Below, piece after piece: positions 11,901-29,200 of a stretch of 64,000 nucleotides of DNA. The stretch covers positions 744,001 to 808,000 of the forward strand of contig NW_026782129.1 of the NCBI RefSeq assembly GCF_031769215.1, given 5' to 3'. The position numbers and the translations under genes are program-made. Each line of letters begins with the position of its first letter. Position 1 is the stretch's first letter. The notes under the pieces were generated by a model. The model had not been told where the DNA came from. It did not search any database and saw only the letters and a list, made by a program, of their open reading frames with translations. The stretch comes from Ylistrum balloti (taxonomy: Eukaryota).

Positions 11901-14900
11901 AACAGTAGCAGTACAAAGGTAAAAATGTAAAACAATTACTTCAAAATCACTTTTACGGAAATAAATAGCACCGAATATAAAATTACCATTGTGATTTCTA
12001 TAATTTCTCTCAATTTAGTTTTCTTTGTGAAAACGCATTTCTCGTTATGTTGAACTCAATTTGAATTTTCTATTAATTCAAATGATAGATAATAAAAATG
12101 CTGAAAGGCAGAAGTCAACACATGAAGGAATTACTGGAAGAAATGGAAATGAGAGACCACGCCTTCCAGGACCTTGATGGAGATCGGGCTATCTTAGTTC
12201 CCCAAGTAGAAGCCCAGAGGTACGCACATACTCATTTGTATACATTCAAGTGTACTAGATAGTCGATAACAATATCACCATAGATAAAGTGATTCAAATG
12301 TTTATTTTACATAACTGGTGTGTTCTCATTCAAGTGAGTTTGTGCGTTTACATAGATTTGGGTGTCATATCAGACAGAATGCTTTAGTTCATCAGATCAT
12401 TGTTACAATGTATCGAGGACTGTCGAAATCGCTGACGTCATTATTATCAGAAATTCATATGTAAATGAGAAATACAAAGATAATTTATTCTGCTCGTACA
12501 CGTACACATACTAGCATATTTTAGAAGTAGACATTAGTCATAATAAACAGTCACATGTAACTGATTGATGTCGTCATAATTCAGGAAATCCTAATGATAA
12601 AGTATAAAGATATCAATAATTATGTAAAAGGATATAACAAATAATTGTCTATAGAGGGTATATGGATATTCTACATTGGTATACAATTAATGGGGTTACA
12701 AAATGATATTCTCAATTAGTTTCTAACTGAAATTAACACCTAATTTCAGTTAGAAACTAATTGAGAATATAATTTTGTAACCCCATTAATTGTATACCAA
12801 TGTATAATCTATTCGTGAATGTAACGTTAAATGTCTGTTATCAATGATCTAAGTCATTCGTGTACATATCAGACACATTGCTTCGTTTGTTTGTTTTATC
12901 AAGTGTTAACATTTCATTCGTTACGGCTGACTGATTTAAGATAAGACGACGATAACCCTGACACAAATCCTTCTTCCTCTATAATATATTCAGAATTTTT
13001 ATACAAATCTAATCAAACCTTTCCGTAATGTATAAAGGTTGCACAAAGAACAACGATTATAAAGACTTGGCTTTATAGAATTTTTACACAAATCTAATCA
13101 AACCTTTCCGTAATGTATAAAGGTTACACAAAGAACAACTTATCCGAGACAATAAGCGACTACGTGAGGAGATACGAGACGTGAAAGGAAAACTGAGGAA
13201 GGAGAACCGAGAGATGATGAAATTAGGAGAGGTTCTCAGTAACGCTTCTAGTACCATCAAAGAGGTGTTGGTGGTAAGTTTAACTTTTCAGACGGAATTA
13301 ATATCGTCTGAAATGATGTTAGAGTAGACTGGATACTCAAATGTAACGATTTCGTCTCCATACATGACTTACGAGTTATAGAAACACAAAACAGCCAGAA
13401 TGATGTAGTTTGGTCAATGTTTAGGATACATTGTATTTATTACTTACAGGTGTTCTGATGTTAGGTCTAATGAAAACGGAGAGATATAATCAGAGAGGTA
13501 CTGACAGTAGGTTTGATATCAGTGCTATCAGAGAGGTGCCGAGAGTAGGTTTGATATCTAGTGCTTTCAGAGAGGTGCCGACAGTAGGTTTGATATCTAG
13601 TGTTATCAGAGAGGTACCGACAATAGGTTTGATATCTAGTGCTAGATATTCTGACTGTAGGTTTGATATCTAGTGTTATCAGAGAGGTGCCGGCAGTAGG
13701 TTTGATATCTAGTGTTATCAGAGAGGTACCGACAATAGGTTTGATATCTAGTGCTAGATATTCTGACTGTAGGTTTGATATCTAGTGTTATCAGAGAGGT
13801 GCCGGCAGTAGGTTTGATATCTAGTGTTATCAGAGAGGTGCCGACAGTAGGTTTGATATCTAGTGCTTTCAGAGAGGTGCCGACAGTAGGTTTGATATCT
13901 AGTGTTATCAGAGAGGTACCGAGAGTAGGTTTGATATCTAGTGCTATCAGAGAGGTGCCGGCAGTAGATTTGATATCTAGTGCTATCAAAGAGTTGCCGA
14001 CAGTAGGTTTGATATCTAGTGTTATCAGAGAGGTACCGAGAGTAGGTTTGATATCTAGTGCTATCAGAGAGATGCCGGCAGTAGATTTGATATCTAGTGC
14101 TATCAGAGAGGTGCCGACAGTAGGTTTGATATCTTGTCCTATCAGAGAGGTACTGACAGTAGGTTTGATATCTAGTGCTTTCAGAGAGGTACTGACAGTA
14201 GGTTTGATATCTAGTGTTATCAGAGAGGTGCCGACAGTAGGTTTGATATCTAGTGTTATCAGAGAGGTACCGAGAGTAGGTTTGATATCTAGTGCTATCA
14301 GAGAGGTGCCGGCAGTAGATTTGATATCTAGTGCTATCAGAGAGGTGCCGACAGTAGGTTTGATATCTAGTGTTATCAGAGAGGTACCGAGAGTAGGTTT
14401 GATATCTAGTGTTATCAGAGAGGTGCCGACAGTAGGTTTGATATCTAGTGTTATCAGAGAGGTACCGAGAGTAGGTTTGATATCTAGTGTTATCAGAGAG
14501 GTGCCGACAGTAGGTTTGATATCTAGTGTTATCAGAGAGGTACCGAGAGTAGATTTGATATCTAGTGCTATCAGAGAGGTGCCGACAGTAGGTTTGGTAT
14601 CTAGTGTTATCAGAGATGTACTGACAGTAGTTTTGATATCTGGTGCTATCAGAGAGTTACTGACTGTAGGTCTGATATCTAGTACTAGCAAAAAGGTTAT
14701 GGCAATGAATTGAATATGTGTATCCTCAGAATTTCATTGTAAATATCTATCTTTATTTAGGAAAGGTGATCTTTCTGTCTTACTTTTCAAATTTTCGAAG
14801 TCATAACAAGAACAAGCAAACGCACTGTCAATCGAAAACTGATTTGAACAGACGAAAATAAATTAAGATAAAAATAGCATATATTTCTGAGCTAGATAGA

Positions 14901-20800: not shown

Positions 20801-21979
20801 TTGAACACTTTGTCTTGGACGAAGGACAGAAGTATGCCAATAGCAGAAGAAGTCACAACCAAGCACAATCCAGCGTAACAAGCAATTCCGTGTTTAAATG
20901 ATTCACGGTTGATCGTATCCCATGAGCTAACGATGACAAAACACCTGCTGTAAAACGTTAGGCGAACCCCAAATCTCTGGGGTCACAAATCACGGGACAC
21001 AGAGCTCCTTCCTTGTCAGACAGTGACTTCCGCCTATGTCACTGCAAAAAAAACTAAATATACATGATTACATGACAAGAACGTTAACTTCTTATTCGCT
21101 ATTTCAAGTATTTGACATTGTAAATTTGAGGGCTGATATCGATTACAATAGAACATTTGATGCACTTTCTTCACTCGTGGAACCCAAATAAGTAATTATT
21201 GATATACGCCTTGTATGTCTTATGTCCCTTCATTACAATACATGTTTATAAATTACAATAAACCAGTGATCTAAATGTGGAACTGCCACCTCACATTGAT
21301 ATCCGTATTCAGTAAGTTTGTTTCGTGTCGATTAATGGCTTGTAACGACCGACACAATGACAACTGAATGTAGTATATGTCTACCCACGGAGTAGTGGTA
21401 GCGACAGTAGGGGGAAGGATACGTTTGATTGAACGTATAAAACGTAAAACTAATAGTTCCTAACATTTCTGTAACAGATAATAGTTAACGAGGAAAGCTA
21501 CATAGACACTTAATGTGACCACTAAATATCACATAATGTAGCTACAACACGTTAGAGAGGCGATTCTATAATAAGTTACATGGACATGACAGGGGATGCT
21601 GATTACACAAACGAATATACTACATGTCAGAGTCCATCTAAAACACCTTATACAAAACTTGCAGCTCGGTTCACTGATATGAATAACTGTACACACAAAA
21701 CACGTGTAATAGTTAACCAAATTTGTGAATTAAATTACGACACAAAAGCAAGTCTCTAGACTCCACTGTAAATAGATACAATTATATATTGTTATGTAAA
21801 TCAGTGCCTTAATAAGCAATTGAGCACGTGCGTAGTATGAGCAACAAAATACTTTAGAGTTTAAGCTCTTATTACTGTAGTAAATGTATCTAGTGCAGAA
21901 CAAATCAAATTATGACAAAAATAACAAAGGTGTTTAATTAATTATCTGACTTTCTGTGTAACCTTCCTGTTACTGTAAG

Positions 21980-24900
21980 CTACATGACACTGCACGGGGA
22001 TTCGCCTGATATGCGTGGAGGGGTGATTACCAGGTCAGTTCCCATATCAGTTGCTTCGGCAATCATCTTTTGGACAGGAGCGATGGTACAATGGCTGTTG
22101 TAAAGCCCACATTTATAGGATCCACCAGCTTCAGGCTTGGCGAGGCAAATGAAGCAGAATTTCTGGCCGCAGACACACACCATATGTTTACATGCTTGTG
22201 TGTGCTGTATCAACATTCCACATGTAGGACAGGCTCGGATCGACGGGCAACCTTTAAGGCCTACTATTGTTTTCAAGGAAGCTTCTTTCAAGATTTTAAG
22301 TCTTGGATCTTCTCCCGTACATGCAGTATTTCCGCAGCTAGTAATACCAGACGTTTTCCATTTACCGAGGCAATACCAGCAAAACTCATACCGTTCACCG
22401 CTTTTGCTGCAAGACAGACACAACACCCGTCTATCTTTGGAATTTTCTCGCATGCAGAATATTGAGCATTTTGGGCACTCTTGTATTCCAGCTGATTTTC
22501 GCATGTAGTTTTGAGAAAGTTTTGTCTCAAAATCATTCTTTTCTTCATCTGTTAGTACAGCGAGTCGCCGGACTATGAAATATTCCCATACTTGTCCACA
22601 GTATGTTGAATTTTCTCGATCTATATAGGGACAGTGGAACTGACATTTTCCAGCAGTAAGCAAACTTCTGCAATATGCAGTCAGAGATTCTGGACCTGTG
22701 GACGTGAAACAAAATCGCATTCAGACCATCAACGTAAGGTTACCGTTATCAGACGCATAAATATATTTAAAACAATCACTGAATACCAACACTAGGTATC
22801 CATATAAACGAGTTTCGATAGTTCTTTTTCGTTAGAGACACTTACTATAAGTGATATAATGTTGTGGATGTAAATATATTGTAGAGTTACTAACCAATGG
22901 CGTGTCCACATGGCATTTTTGCCCGTTGATTGTTGGGGTCATCATCCCATGTAATCATATCTGGTAGATCAGTTAATTCCACGCCATCGTCCAGCTGTTT
23001 AGGTTGGTGTTGTGGTGTGGGATCAGGGTCACTACCTCCCGGTAGTTGAAATACTACGAACAGCTGTGACCTGTCCTGGAGCTTATAATCAGACAGATAC
23101 ATCTTTTTCCCTTTTTTGGTCATCTCCAATTCTTTAGCTGTAATACATACATATTTTACAGGTATTATTTAATTAAAATTCAGTTGCATATTTATTTTAT
23201 ATGGTAATATATTTTTGTAACTAATTGATGCTCTACCTGCAAACAGGACATGTTGGCTTGTGGCTTCTATTCCGTTCCATTCGGAGATTTTTCTCATTAA
23301 GTCCTCAACAGATGCATCCTACAATTAATGGATAAAAGACGAATTAATCACATTCTAGTCATTATCTTTCATTCATGTTGAGAATTTAGGAAAATAACGT
23401 TTTAGTTCCGAAATCACATTAACACGTTGTATGCTTCCTGGCGGTAACAAGATGGTTGCGTCGATGTAGAATTGTGAATCGAAAATAAATGTTTGTTGAT
23501 CAGAGGTATTTTCAGTTCATGGCAGTAATAAATGTGTTATAAACCTTTACGAATTATTTGCGTCTGGCCAGACCGAGACATTACTAATATACAAAGTTTA
23601 TCTGCCGAAATATACGCTAACAAATTCCACTTAAAGACATCTGTGAATTTACTCAACGCCCTCTCGTTTACACTATCGGTCAGTAATGGCGGATGTCAGT
23701 CTTAAAGAGATAAACTCCCCAAGCATAAATCTGAAATCGATTGTTTACTACTCTTTTTTATCGCTATCACTTTAATTAATTTGTTAAAATAAAACTAAAT
23801 TCTACTTCAAACAAATTTCAATTTATCATGAGTTTTGGAAAAATGCCGTTCGATCTTATAATAATGTTAAAACGTCGTCTATGTCATGGCTAAGGCCATA
23901 CATACACAAGATGAAAGCATCCCCGAGGGTAGTAAATCAAAGGTATTTACATTTCGTAAAACATAATTCAGACAGAACTGACGAATTGTAAATAGCCTGG
24001 ACAACCAGTCATGACTAGGCGGTTCAATGTTCAGCTAGGACATGCTTTTCTTTTCCTTTACTGATTTTAGCGCTCAGAGGTTTTCAAATTCGTAAAGAGT
24101 TTTCTCATCAAATATCGAAAATGATATATGAGTTGCTTTGATGGGAGGGAGGGAGATACAACAAGGGACTGGTTTTGAGTTCAAGTAACGGAAGAAGATT
24201 TTATCTAAGCATCTAAAGTATTCGTAACCAGGTTTGGTTTTTTCATTTATTTTTGTAAAATGTTTCCATTTCGCCCACTCATACATCACTGGACCCCAAT
24301 ATTGAGACTTAAAGAAAATGATTTGCATTTTGTAGACATTTTGCCATCTTACATACAGTGATAAAAATACTTATCATCGATCTGCTTGTAATAATAATTA
24401 TAAAACGACCATGGATTATAAGACATTTCCCCTTTCTAATATCTGTCGATAATACTTCACAAAGGCATGTACTGAATAGATCTTTGTACAAATGTCACGG
24501 AAGAAACATCTTTCCAATTAATTATGCAAACTCGACAACATGACACGACTGTCAAGAACCGTATAAGGGTCCGAAAGGATGTTCTGAAGAAATCAGGAGG
24601 GAATACATTACGGTATGTTAGATGTATCTTTTAATAAAAATTCTCTTTAATTTGTTTTTTTATGACGATAGAATAAATCCCGAAAAAATTCGAAATCATG
24701 TTTGGTATCAAGATATCCATCAATATGTAGACATAAAAACACATTTGAATTATATTCCAATGTAAAACACTTTGAATAGCTATTTGGCGACTGTCAGTTT
24801 TGAAGTCTGTCTTCATTAAATACCGATACGAGATAAAGTAGTCCCATCAGTAACATACACATAGTAATTATACTTATTTTGTGTATATTTAAGGATATTT

Positions 24901-25214
24901 TTTCCCAGATGTAATAAAAACTTTATCATGTCGGCCATGACTACAGTGTTTTCTTTCAATAAGCTAACGGAATACCGAAGTTCCGAAGAACCGAAAGTGG
25001 CAGTTCCGAAGAACCGAAAGTGACAGTTCCGAAGAACCGAAAGTGGCAGTTCCGAAGAGCCGAAAGTGACAGTTCCGAAGAACCGAAAGTGACAGTTCCG
25101 AAGAACCGAAAGTGACAGTTCCGAAGAACCGAAAGTGAAAGTTCCGAAGAACCGAAAGTGGCAGTTCCGAAGAACCGAAAGTGACAGTTCCGAAGAAGCG
25201 AAAATGAAAGAGAA

Positions 25215-25250
<36 letters not shown>

Positions 25251-26082
25251 ATATTTCTCTATGTTAATATCCAAAAGGATAAACAACACAAAATACGAAA
25301 ATGTATTTCACGGCGACAGTGTCATCGCGACTGATTTATTAAACAAACATGTAAATCATACACTAATCTGTTACAAATACACCATATACAATGTATGTAT
25401 ATATATGTCACTCCTTTCCATTAATAACTATTACATTTTACCGCAACAGAAACCCCACACAGATGAACTTCTGTTACATTTTACCGCAAAATAAAACCCC
25501 ACACAGTTGAAATTGATAATGAGAAATAAAAATTTCTACGTCCGTGTGTCCCTACCTGTGACGCCGGAATGACACGTACAGGTAACACGCGACAGTACGA
25601 CACTGGTCTTAATTTGCACGTGCAAATCATACACATAGCGCCCCATATTAGCGACTCATACCACAGAGAAAATAATTTCACCCTAATTCCAAACCGTCAA
25701 ACGGTTGGAATTATATATATATGCGTGTGTGTACTACATATAAGGTGAAATACTATCTATGTTTCCTGATTCTGTCTAATAGAATTACAGTCAGTAAGTA
25801 GAGATTCTATTTTATCATACTTTTGTTTTTGTTTTCTATTGCTTTGTCCCATGTATAAGTGTATTTTGAGAGGTATATCATGCCGAATTTCACAAATTAA
25901 AGACGGAAACATAGCTATTTCTTGCCTTAATACTTGTAAATGTAATAGTTGTATCGCTGTATAATATACAGAGTACAAAGATCGATTTGTATCCAATATG
26001 TGAATTTACTTACTTTGTGTATGCTAAACGTTGTGTTCTTGTTACTGCCAGATGTAACAAGCAACTGTATCGTGTCGGCCAT
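21980..26082 (-). CDS. Ubiquitin-like domain + RBR (RING1-IBR-RING2) E3 ligase with C-terminal CaaX, 4 exons, 369 aa
   Basis: Exons 26082-26014 (MADTIQLLVTSGSNKNTTFSIHK|gtaagt), 23318-23237 (DASVEDLMRKISEWNGIEATSQHVLFA), 23137-22895 (AKELE...LFVVFQLPGGS...MPCGHAI), 22695-21980; phases 0,1,1 consistent, total 1110 nt. IBR CPKC...CLSC...CWYC...CGNTAC; RING2 CPTC...ACKHMVCVC...FCFIC; ends ESPCSVM*. Confidence 0.88.
24878..24976 (-). pseudogene. Dead duplicate (copy A) of exon 1 and proximal promoter of the Ubl-RBR gene
   Basis: Aligns to 26014-26118 (ATGGCCGAC...ACATCTGG...ATACACAAA). Exon-equivalent is 61 nt instead of 69 (frameshift) and the donor GTAAGT has become ATAAGT. Confidence 0.8.
24979..25210. 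repeat. 23-bp tandem array (9 full copies + 1 partial) followed by (AC)n
   Basis: Unit AGTTCCGAAGAACCGAAAGTG(A/G)C; ends GCGAAAATGAAAG; (AC)~16 at 25217-25248. Confidence 0.97.
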
Positions 26083-26210
26083 ATCTAAAGGTGTTTCTGT
26101 AATGATAACGGAAAACCCTACTTTCTGTTTGACAAGTAATTTTCAGCGGTGACGTCATAGCAGTTATTTCGCAAGTAAAACGAAAACGGAAGATAAATTG
26201 TTGATAATAG
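26083..26210 (-). promoter_or_regulatory. Putative proximal promoter/5'UTR of the Ubl-RBR gene with kB-like, CRE and IRF-like motifs
   Basis: GGAAAACCC at 26110-26118 (GGGTTTTCC on minus), perfect CRE TGACGTCA at 26150-26157, AAAACGAAAACGGAAG at 26177-26192; block conserved in copies at ~24.9 and ~34.2 kb. TSS not observed. Confidence 0.5.
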
Positions 26211-29200
26211 TTGAAAGTCAGTTATACTCCAACAGTAATATACTGGACGAGCATGAACAGTATTCACGGAGAACTTGTCTAAAGTTTCTCAATGTTCCTG
26301 TGCCCCAAGGGCAAGACGCCCGTACCTTCAATGCGCTAGGTGCTGTCCGAGATATCTGTGACCGACGATTAGGAATCCAGGTACAACAACATTCCATTTC
26401 CAGATGTCATCTGGTAGGCCCTATCAGGAACGGGAAAGCATCAGTCATCATCCGTTTCGTTCGCTACACTGACAGGGAAAAAAATTGACTCCAAAAAGGA
26501 ACTTAGGGGGTCGGGTATTCTCATTGTCGAGTCTTTGACAAAATCTCGACAAACTATTGTTCACGAGCTAAACCGTCGTAGACACGACAAGAAACTGTTT
26601 TCCTTCTGGACGAGAAACGGCAGGATCTTCGCCAAAAAAACCCAATGATTCCACGAAAACTCTAATAAAAACAATCAATGATATAAATGCCTTAGTTCCA
26701 GACTATACATACAGGCCCAAGTAAAAATAAAAAAAAATAGAATTTTTCACTTGCAATATCTATGGATTATCTATTTAAACATGCATACTAGTGATGATTG
26801 ATTGTATGCTTCACATTTGTATCACTAATATCATACTGTATTTTTGCATTATGTTCTGTTATCTCCATGGCTGTATTTTTTTTTATTTGTCAGTAAAGTT
26901 TGTTATACTTATTTTCTCCTTTTTTTGGAGTAAGGACTTGGAGTTGGACTAAGGAGTTGTGTAAAAATACATTTCTCTTATGTACAGGTATATATATATA
27001 TATCTACACACAATATACTACATTGTAACTAACGTGAACCGATAACTTCCTGTGTTATATTAGCGTGTTATCTTAGCGTGTTACTTTAGCAGTCACCTAA
27101 GTGTGTTGCCTAAACGCGCTACTTTAGAGTGTTATCCTACTTTGTACACTGTGTAGGGGTGCTACATAGTGTACAAAGTAATGTGGTACCTGCCTGGTAC
27201 AATTAACATCTGTACATAGATTTAGTCCGCATACTGAATATTGATACTTACGAACTCCTTTTCTTTAATGAGTCCGTCCGTCCGTCCTTTTAAATGATCA
27301 CACTTTGACTAAGGTATGTTATACAGGCAGATTATATACTGTGCTTGCTGCAACCTTATGTTAACGATAGTCCATTAGTATATTGTTTCTTACGTCTTAA
27401 CGTATCCCCATATTATGCATGTGTCCGTCCGTCCGTAAACTTATCCTGGGTAGTGCATATATACCGTGTAGTGCTCCATCCTTATGCTGACGACAGTTCA
27501 TGTGTATGTTGTCTTTTTTTTACGAATTCCTTTTTAATGCGTGCGTGCGTCCTTACGTTCGTCCACCCGTTAACTTTTTCTGGTACACAATGTTAAGTAA
27601 ACAGTACGGCCGTATACAATATATATGTTTAAAAATGTAATCTATGGTGCATACAAGTTTACGCACTGTACAATATGTTAAACTACTTTACCAGTAAGTG
27701 TTTAATAACTGTTGTTTTTGTATGTGTAGTGAGCAAATATAAGAATGTGAGTGTTGTTCATAAGTGTGTATGTGAGTTTATACATGTGTGTGATGCACGT
27801 GTATGTACGCTATGTAGTGTTACATATATATGTGTGTATGTGTATGTGTGTTGTGTATATTTACAGCTATGCGTGTATGTTTTGGATATGTTTGGGATGC
27901 GTATGTTATGCATGTGTATGCGTGTGAGTATGTGCTGTGAATGTAAGTGCGTGTATGCGATGTAATGTTTGAGAGAGGGTGAGTATGCGCGTGTGTGAGG
28001 GTGTGTGTGAGTGCGTTGAGTATATATGAATGTATATTTATATATGCACTTAGGTATTGACGCGTGTTTGTGTTTTAGATGTATTATAGTTTGTACGTGT
28101 GTACATGCCCTATATATACAATATACTTGATTATTTCATGTACTTGTTGCTTAGAGTGTGCTGCCTTATATTTGGTTGTACATTAATATATGTAATTATA
28201 AGTGTGTATGTATATACTGTATATTGAAATATTGCCCTTTTTTACATGAAATTTTTCATTTTTGTATGCTCACATCAAGGCTTATTTTGTTCTTTTCTTC
28301 TCAGTTACGCAGATAAACAAAACCTTTTGCTGGTTTGCACACTGTCTACTATGCATGATACCGTTTCGCTATTTTGTAAACTTACGTCTCGGTTTATTTG
28401 ATAATGGGTAATTCTTACATGTGTCACAGAATAGCGATCGGTATCTTCTGTTCAAAGGTCTACGGTAAAATGCGTTATGAAATCACTTCTATTTCTATCA
28501 TTAAATCTCAGGTTAATTTTAAGCATGTTCGACTGTTGTCGTCTTTGTCTCTCTTGGTCAATCTATAGTTTAAATAAATTAACGCTCTCCTGTTTTCAAA
28601 ATTTTGAATTTTCAGTAATCTTGTTGCTACTTTTATTGCAACATATGGACATTGAATCCAATCCTTGCTCGGGGCTTAACGAGCTATCGATTTTTCACCT
28701 TAATATCAGAAGTGTTAGGAATAAACTTGATTATGTAGAAGATATAGCAGGTGAGAATATGTCTAACAGAAACTCATTTAGATGATCAGATACCTACAGA
28801 TGATTTACTTATAGCTGGATTTCATGAACCTTTTCGACTTGATAGGAATTTTGCTGGTGGAGGTGTTCTGGTCTACATAAACGATCTTCTAAAAGTAAAC
28901 CGCTTAACGGAGTTAGAATTTCCCGGAGATAGGTAATTTGGATTAAAATCACACTAACCAATTCCTCCTTCATTATAGGTACAGCATATAGACCAGAAAA
29001 TTCTGTGTTACCCTTTTGGGACAATTTGCGTACATCTATTAATAATGCTTTAACACCAAATATAATAGTAACTGGCGATTTAAATGTCGACTTACTAACT
29101 GCATCTACTAACCATTATCTTTTCGAAATTATAAGTTCTTTTAGTATGATTAATGTCATAAACGAACCAACTCGTACTGGACCAACTCGATCCAGCCTTC

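Follow-up and report, generated by a model that had tools for sequence, protein, structure and literature searches.

A scallop gene combining a ubiquitin-like domain that ends in Gly-Gly, an RBR ligase module and a C-terminal CaaX box

The stretch of DNA analyzed here (hereafter, the window) comprises 64,000 nucleotides of the scallop Ylistrum balloti (RefSeq assembly GCF_031769215.1, contig NW_026782129.1, positions 744,001 to 808,000 of the forward strand), and all window coordinates given below are counted from its first letter. An earlier note, made from the letters alone, had described a gene of the window in which a ubiquitin-like (Ubl) domain is fused to a RING-between-RING (RBR) ubiquitin ligase (E3) that ends in a CaaX box. 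We confirmed the existence of this Ubl-RBR-CaaX gene: the sequence and its six-frame translation reproduced the four-exon model exactly, and the Ubl of 85 amino acids ending in FQLPGG, the ACKHM motif and the CSVM terminus were all found where they had been reported. The 369-residue product consists of four parts, namely, an 85-residue ubiquitin-fold domain, a linker, an RBR module and a 29-residue tail ending in CSVM. The splice sites are canonical at all junctions, the open reading frame (ORF) is uninterrupted, and every zinc ligand that is conserved in the family described below is present. The features of the gene are as follows.

26082..21980, minus strand: scallop Ubl-RBR-CaaX gene, four exons, 1110 nt, 369 codons plus stop, with exon phases that fit (three-frame and six-frame translation).
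26014..26082, minus strand: exon 1, 23 codons, start codon ATG at 26082..26080; first beta-hairpin of the Ubl; donor AAA/gtaagt.
23237..23318, minus strand: exon 2, helix and strand 3 of the Ubl; acceptor tgtag/, donor G/gtagag.
22895..23137, minus strand: exon 3, end of the Ubl, Gly-Gly junction, linker and start of the RING1-like finger (PCGH); acceptor ttacag/, donor G/gttagt.
21980..22695, minus strand: exon 4, remainder of the RING1-like finger, IBR, RING2, tail, CaaX box and stop codon (21982..21980); acceptor ccacag/.
23034..23039, minus strand: codons GGA GGT of Gly84-Gly85, aligned with G75-G76 of ubiquitin; LPGG corresponds to residues 82-85.
22935..22970, minus strand: acidic linker motif DLPDMITWDDDP, conserved in the family alignments.
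22598..22913, minus strand: RING1-like finger, split by intron 3, that has just one zinc site (PCGH ... AYC ... HCPY ... YCG).
22319..22480, minus strand: IBR domain with eight conserved Cys, assigned from the Pfam scores of relatives and from PDB sequence matches.
22088..22234, minus strand: RING2 (Rcat), with ACKHM at residues 299-303 and the codon of the catalytic-type Cys300 at 22192..22190.
21995..22069, minus strand: rapidly evolving spacer (residues 341-365) that links the conserved APxQ to the CaaX box.
21983..21994, minus strand: CaaX box Cys366-Ser-Val-Met369, directly followed by the stop codon.
21933..21938, minus strand: ATTAAA, a candidate polyadenylation signal 41 nt past the stop codon, identified by pattern match only.

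The same four exons are present at a locus of the scallop Pecten maximus, which was reached from protein P0076, and tblastn found exons 1 and 2 in the orthologues of both P. maximus and the scallop Argopecten irradians. Because the flanks of the P. maximus locus are colinear with the window on both sides, with a gene for a major facilitator superfamily (MFS) transporter at the 5' end and one rich in repeats at the 3' end, we regard this locus as the positional orthologue. The 3' neighbor is also common to the A. irradians locus and the window, and in the deposited protein model of A. irradians, the C-terminal CTIM is encoded by the same last exon. Relative to P. maximus, the ratio of nonsynonymous to synonymous substitution rates (dN/dS) was 0.18 in exon 1, 0.31 in exon 2, 0.13 in exon 3 and 0.09 in both halves of exon 4, and the value for exon 3 relative to A. 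irradians was 0.06, with synonymous divergence (dS) at or near saturation. The ORF is intact and spliced and evolves under strong purifying selection. The earlier note had named, in advance, the conservation of the Gly-Gly junction and the CaaX box in orthologues as a point on which its claim would turn, and both have been retained by the syntenic orthologues in two further scallop genera and recur across the family. Since dN/dS is 0.09–0.13 against the P. maximus orthologue and both the Gly-Gly and the CaaX box are conserved, the combination of Ubl, RBR and CaaX features is more than the product of chance.

A different account would be that the model is wrong, for example, because another last exon is used via the GT at 22030-22029, or that the gene is decaying or is a young pseudogene. 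Several observations weigh on this side and against a functional gene. First, the only sequencing run found for Y. balloti, compared with the window over 21000-26400, consists of DNA contigs of a second individual that also cover the introns, and it yielded polymorphisms but no RNA support for the model. Second, this individual differs from the window at nine coding positions, seven of them nonsynonymous and two synonymous, a small sample, yet an unusual ratio for a gene with a long-term dN/dS of 0.09. Third, the P. maximus reference (LR736839.1, L019:12890-12920) carries two extra bases (GAGAG) inside the IBR that shift the frame, and the annotated protein P0076 ends early. Additionally, a dead copy of exon 1 lies in intron 1 of the window. 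On the other side, the ORF is open, the junctions are canonical and the ligands are intact, and past the 2-nt change, the P. maximus frame stays open as far as CTVM with a dN/dS of 0.09. Because this downstream frame is open and equally constrained, the change reflects either an error in the assembly or very recent damage. Furthermore, the second individual has a T-to-C change at 22029 that removes the one internal position in the tail that could plausibly act as a splice donor, its CSVM codons are identical to those of the window, and the A. irradians model ends in the same exon, as described above. We consider a wrong model or a decaying gene very unlikely. In the stretch compared (run X1, window 21000-25008), the second individual differed from the window at ∼0.8% of the coding sites and ∼0.5% of the intron and flank sites.

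A search with exon 4 returned 167 homologues at E ≤ 1e-3. These belong to a family of Ubl and RBR proteins of ∼340–350 residues in bivalves, a gastropod, an annelid, hemichordates, amphioxus, cnidarians and a flatworm, to which a second search added sponges, and fishes, sharks, lungfish and amphibians have Ubl-less versions of ∼270 residues. Among the ∼240 matches listed, none is from a mammal or bird. The members are registered under labels such as “DDB_G0292642-like,” “RNF144A-A-like,” “RNF19A-like,” “ARI5,” and even “UBB” and “RL40-like.” The window gene is a scallop member of an old, uncharacterized metazoan Ubl-RBR family that is conserved from sponges to amphibians. One sponge relative (P0222, Ephydatia muelleri Em0047g32a) has a second ubiquitin-like domain after the RBR, with CIVM directly behind it, and in this respect resembles the membrane-anchored ubiquitin-fold (MUB) proteins of plants and animals.

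When the exons of the window were compared with Pfam, all scores were below the thresholds: IBR_1 reached 24.4 bits over RING2 (cut-off, 27), IBR_2 reached 18 bits over the IBR, and the ubiquitin model matched exon 2 with an E-value of 0.035. For this reason, the domains were identified through homologues, alignment and a structural model of the orthologue. Relatives do pass the Pfam cut-offs (IBR, 38.7 bits in P0103, with a cut-off of 24.3; IBR_1, 28.8 bits in P0004, with a cut-off of 27), and the PDB sequence matches of the IBR are the IBR domains of ARIH1 and parkin. In alignments of 13 and of 44 family members, no ligand column (Cys or His) of the IBR or RING2 varies, and the window gene has all of these residues. 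The IBR has eight invariant Cys, and the RING2 motif ACKHMVC, with invariant C, H and C columns, fits the context C-x-H-(M/L)-x-C. An AlphaFold model was made of the A. irradians orthologue (P0003), which served as a proxy, with the 44-sequence alignment as input; its mean predicted local distance difference test score (pLDDT) was 87.7, and its predicted template modeling score (pTM) was 0.56. When this model was submitted to Foldseek, full-length Parkin was the first match (E = 1e-11), and HHARI and ARIH2 were also found. The N-terminal domain of the model superimposed on ubiquitin with a TM-score of ∼0.9 and a root mean square deviation (rmsd) of 1.6–1.9 Å, and its pLDDT exceeded 90 over residues 1-80. 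The Ubl of P0003 aligned with residues 1-76 of ubiquitin, with its Gly-Gly on G75-G76, and phmmer matched it to polyubiquitin. The N-terminal domain thus has the beta-grasp fold, and it ends in a Gly-Gly at the ubiquitin position.

The first RING differs from the usual form. The RBR had been described in the earlier note as full, and this did not hold: neither the first CxxC pair nor the CxxC belonging to zinc site I is present in RING1 anywhere in the family. Instead of the eight zinc ligands of a two-site RING1, there remain a Cys-x-His, a Cys-Pro and a Cys, which correspond to site II, together with one extra Cys. Ahead of the IBR, the only invariant ligand columns are C122, H124, C148 and C159, with C135 conserved at 90%, and the 40-residue linker contains no Cys or His in either the window gene or the family alignments. 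With conservation restricted to PCGH, one Cys in AYC, CP and YCG, and no Cys or His contributed by the linker, zinc site I is missing family-wide. The linker had also been called Pro-rich, which is correct at its start only; the acidic motif D(L/A)PDMITWDDDP forms its conserved part. In this motif, D105 is invariant, P104, M106 and D111 are nearly so, and the pLDDT in the orthologue model is 82–93. The family-wide loss of zinc site I coincides with this invariant acidic segment, DxPDMITWDDDP, just upstream (22598-22970, alignment A2). Since RING1 is without one zinc site, the engagement of the ubiquitin-conjugating enzyme (E2) may be unusual, and this counts against the reading favored below. 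Cys300 of RING2 would very probably accept ubiquitin from an E2 as a thioester and hand it to substrates close to the membrane.

At the Gly-Gly junction, the columns R81, L82, G84 and G85, the equivalents of R72, L73, G75 and G76 of ubiquitin, are each at least 90% conserved in the 44-sequence alignment, which extends from sponges to amphioxus. The residue that follows is Ser in 25 of the 44 junctions and Pro in none of them, the 44 being pattern-match picks among the 120 matches of the first search. A Pro at this point would block deubiquitinases. Ligases with an integral Ubl, Parkin and HOIL-1 among them, are not known to retain a Gly-Gly at the end of this domain; its conservation here therefore speaks for processing or for another role of the RLxGG tail. 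Besides the C-terminal tail, residues 84-86 at the junction are the only segment of the P0003 model with a pLDDT below 50. Furthermore, a Ubl-less paralogue of the ark clam Tegillarca starts in the linker just past the Gly-Gly point, and the vertebrate members also lack the Ubl. Deubiquitinases may cut after Gly85, as they do in UBA52, RPS27A and FAU, which would release a free Ubl with a Gly-Gly terminus and leave a ligase whose N-terminus lies in the acidic linker. Two points weigh against such a cut. The R72 equivalent is Gln in the scallop clade, including the window gene, and the A. irradians sequence is MQVSGG, which may weaken recognition by deubiquitinases or by the ubiquitin-activating enzyme (E1); and the linker past the Gly-Gly is conserved and confidently modeled. 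Because the Gln, the MQVSGG and the conserved linker have to be set against the conservation of the Gly-Gly, we place the chances for and against cleavage at about even.

Much of the same evidence bears on the alternative that the protein is the same lipid-anchored RBR ligase but that its Ubl stays attached and acts in cis, through Parkin-like autoinhibition, by placing the RLxGG tail in an allosteric or donor-ubiquitin site, or by binding an E2 as in prenylated MUB. The best multi-domain match in Foldseek is Parkin, which itself contains a Ubl; the conserved, well-modeled linker would then be no mere spacer; the R72 and L73 equivalents are relaxed in the scallop clade; and the sponge member with a second Ubl directly ahead of its CaaX box shows an arrangement in the style of MUB. 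An attached Ubl accords less well with the retention of the Gly-Gly from sponges to amphioxus, an end that integral Ubls are not known to keep, or with the consistent absence of Pro from the next position. The confinement of low model confidence to the junction and the C-terminal tail, and the start of Ubl-less members within the linker, also speak for separation. We consider a permanently attached Ubl, the main alternative to the reading favored below, somewhat unlikely.

The C-terminal tail was compared in the same manner. The window gene ends in CSVM, the P. maximus orthologue in ...TSTESWCTVM, the A. irradians orthologue in ...SNGSWCTIM, and a partial A. irradians paralogue in ...GGWRCTLM. 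The window box thus has a Cys at position -4, an aliphatic residue at a2, a location at the extreme C-terminus, and conservation in orthologues after a flexible region. The tail of the window gene, taken as spacer plus box, is 33% identical to the tail of the P. maximus orthologue and 23% identical to that of the A. irradians orthologue, and a hypervariable spacer followed by a fixed box is a pattern typical of prenylated GTPases. The tail of the P0003 model has a pLDDT below 50 and is predicted to be disordered. Met at the X position of a CaaX box favors farnesylation. The tail of the window gene is acidic, and neither a polybasic stretch nor an upstream Cys was found in it. CSVM is also the farnesylated box of human Rheb (PMC7255682). 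Because a polybasic stretch and an upstream Cys are absent, as in Rheb, residence at endomembranes rather than at the plasma membrane is predicted.

Most members of the family end soon after the conserved APxQ, with ends of the type ...VAPVQTxIPGxx or ...IPVW(S/N)R, and the window gene runs 29 residues further. A spacer followed by a CaaX box was found in 23 of the 216 family members with a complete core, in scallops, an ark clam, many sponges, two sharks and a caecilian, and by a rough estimate, fewer than 1% of the members would fit the loose CaaX pattern by chance. In Tegillarca, transcripts and the genome contain the Ubl-less paralogue with an acidic tail of ∼120 residues that ends in GKKRCIIQ. 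The boxes in the sponge clade include CSVL, CNIL, CVLL, CVLS and CIVM, the two sharks have CTII and SWCTIS, and the caecilian has SWCTIL. CaaX-bearing versions are already present, unnamed, in public protein sets. In a tree built on trimmed cores, two Tegillarca paralogues were sisters (83/67), and the monophyly of the scallop CaaX set was neither recovered nor rejected (approximately unbiased (AU) test, p = 0.115). On a quick tree of 216 rows, the CaaX trait required 17 changes, compared with 18–23 when the labels were shuffled; because 17 is hardly below the shuffled values, gains, losses and poorly resolved branches are inseparable here. Splice isoforms were considered as an explanation of the pattern of ends with and without CaaX and were rejected for the one pair tested, since two basking-shark proteins are 77% identical and are hence paralogues.

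If the CaaX box were unused, the protein would be a soluble Ubl-RBR ligase like its paralogues, and its tail a neutral extension. The closest paralogue in the same genome, which is 79% identical, ends in ...APVQTAVPESE without a CaaX box; no CaaX was found in the other paralogues examined within this genome; and, as noted, most members end near APxQ. The acidic tail lacks a second membrane signal, and its dN/dS (0.31) exceeds that of the core (∼0.09). These points weigh against lipid anchoring. A neutral extension would nevertheless have to accommodate the retention of C-(S/T)-(V/I/L)-M in three genera and a partial paralogue while the remaining tail diverges almost freely, the excess of 23 among 216 members over the chance estimate, and the fact that CSVM is a proven farnesylation box. 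We regard an unused box as improbable. A lipid-anchored RBR ligase is, in our assessment, well supported by the sequence comparisons, and farnesyltransferase would probably lipidate Cys366. Removal of -SVM and methylation would follow, and the ligase would reside on the cytosolic face of endomembranes in the manner of Rheb, without a second signal.

Taking these lines of evidence together, we tentatively favor, at slightly below an even chance for the proposal as a whole, a functional gene for a farnesylated, membrane-anchored and thioester-forming RBR ubiquitin ligase that is made as a precursor of the ubiquitin-fusion type.

Upstream of the start codon and inside intron 1, the following further features were found.

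26110..26131, minus strand: block CAAACAGAAAGTAGGGTTTTCC, resembling an interferon-stimulated response element or interferon regulatory factor (IRF) site, ∼30–50 nt upstream of the ATG, from a three-species promoter alignment.
26150-26157, minus strand: palindromic cAMP response element (CRE) TGACGTCA, not conserved.
26175-26192, minus strand: second IRF-like element, TTTC-rich, which aligns with TTTCATTTTCGG in P. maximus.
24870..24938, minus strand: dead duplicate of exon 1 in intron 1, with a 7-nt deletion and a donor changed from gtaagt to ataagt, from alignment with the live exon 1.

The block CAAAC(A/T)GAAAGTAGGG in the 5' flank, ∼30–50 nt upstream of the ATG, is common to P. maximus and partly to A. 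irradians. Exact GAAANNGAAAS sites number six in the window, compared with 1.7 expected, and two of them lie in an array of 23-mers in intron 1. We treat the IRF-like promoter blocks as a lead only, which may hint at immune induction, although we consider such induction doubtful. If the block is real, it would be an added candidate for the poorly known antiviral toolkit of bivalves. Prenyl targeting is used by GBP, OAS1 p46 and ZAP-L. At its furthest extent, this line of thought would make the gene part of an old metazoan module that amniotes have lost and in which a Ubl modifier and its own membrane-anchored RBR ligase are made from one precursor, split at the Gly-Gly and induced through IRF in bivalves, as an invertebrate counterpart of the ISG15 system joined to prenyl targeting. 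We rate this extended proposal as quite improbable.

Some further observations concern the surroundings of the gene and of its orthologues. The array in intron 1 consists of about ten tandem 23-mers (24979-25210) and is followed by a (CA)n run; both lie upstream of the dead exon 1, that is, at higher coordinates, and the region as a whole spans 24870-25250. The 3' neighbor gene in the window (13500-14700) holds a long in-frame tandem repeat, which matches the P. maximus neighbor in many registers, with steps that are mostly multiples of 39 nt. In A. irradians (L020:24065-24334; proteins P0090, P0102 and P0011), there are several partial or rearranged extra copies of the gene. They include a protein with a Ubl and RING2 only that ends in CTLM, a copy with a long duplicated tail, and, ∼8 kb downstream of the orthologue, a fragment interrupted by an in-frame stop.

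To our knowledge, RBR ligases reach membranes by transmembrane helices or by adaptors, and a search of the accessible literature returned no description of a prenyl-anchored RBR ligase or of this family. The family joins three features, namely, a ligase preceded by a ubiquitin-type Gly-Gly junction, a one-site RING1, and a recurrent CaaX tail. It is a compact system in which to ask whether a Ubl and a ligase can arise from one precursor and how lipid anchoring shapes the choice of substrates by an RBR ligase. Among known proteins, Parkin (Ubl-RING0-RING1-IBR-REP-RING2) is alike in having an N-terminal ubiquitin fold followed by an RBR, and is the best multi-domain match in Foldseek. However, Parkin has a RING0 and a REP, and the scallop protein is without both, with no extra zinc domain between the Ubl and RING1, and the identity is only 13–17%. 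Parkin is recruited by phospho-ubiquitin, whereas the scallop protein has instead a CaaX tail, a Ubl that ends in Gly-Gly and a one-site RING1. UBA52, RPS27A and FAU (FUBI-eS30) likewise consist of ubiquitin or a Ubl that ends in Gly-Gly fused to an unrelated protein, and the residue after the Gly-Gly in the scallop protein is not Pro. Their partners are ribosomal, whereas the scallop partner is an E3 ligase, its cleavage is putative, and its R72 equivalent is Gln. RNF144A/B, RNF19A/B and RNF217 are alike in being RBR ligases held at membranes. They are anchored by a C-terminal transmembrane helix, whereas the scallop tail, inspected by eye, has no hydrophobic stretch and carries a CaaX box instead. 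MUB, a membrane-anchored ubiquitin-fold protein of the ubiquitin system, likewise carries a ubiquitin fold together with a CaaX prenylation signal on a single polypeptide (PMC4996978). In MUB, the CaaX box directly follows the Ubl and there is no ligase, whereas in the scallop protein ∼280 residues, including the RBR, lie between the two, and the Ubl ends in Gly-Gly. Finally, in Rheb the same CSVM follows a variable and flexible region, and a polybasic or palmitoyl second signal is likewise absent; the cargo of this anchor is a GTPase in Rheb and an E3 ligase in the scallop protein.

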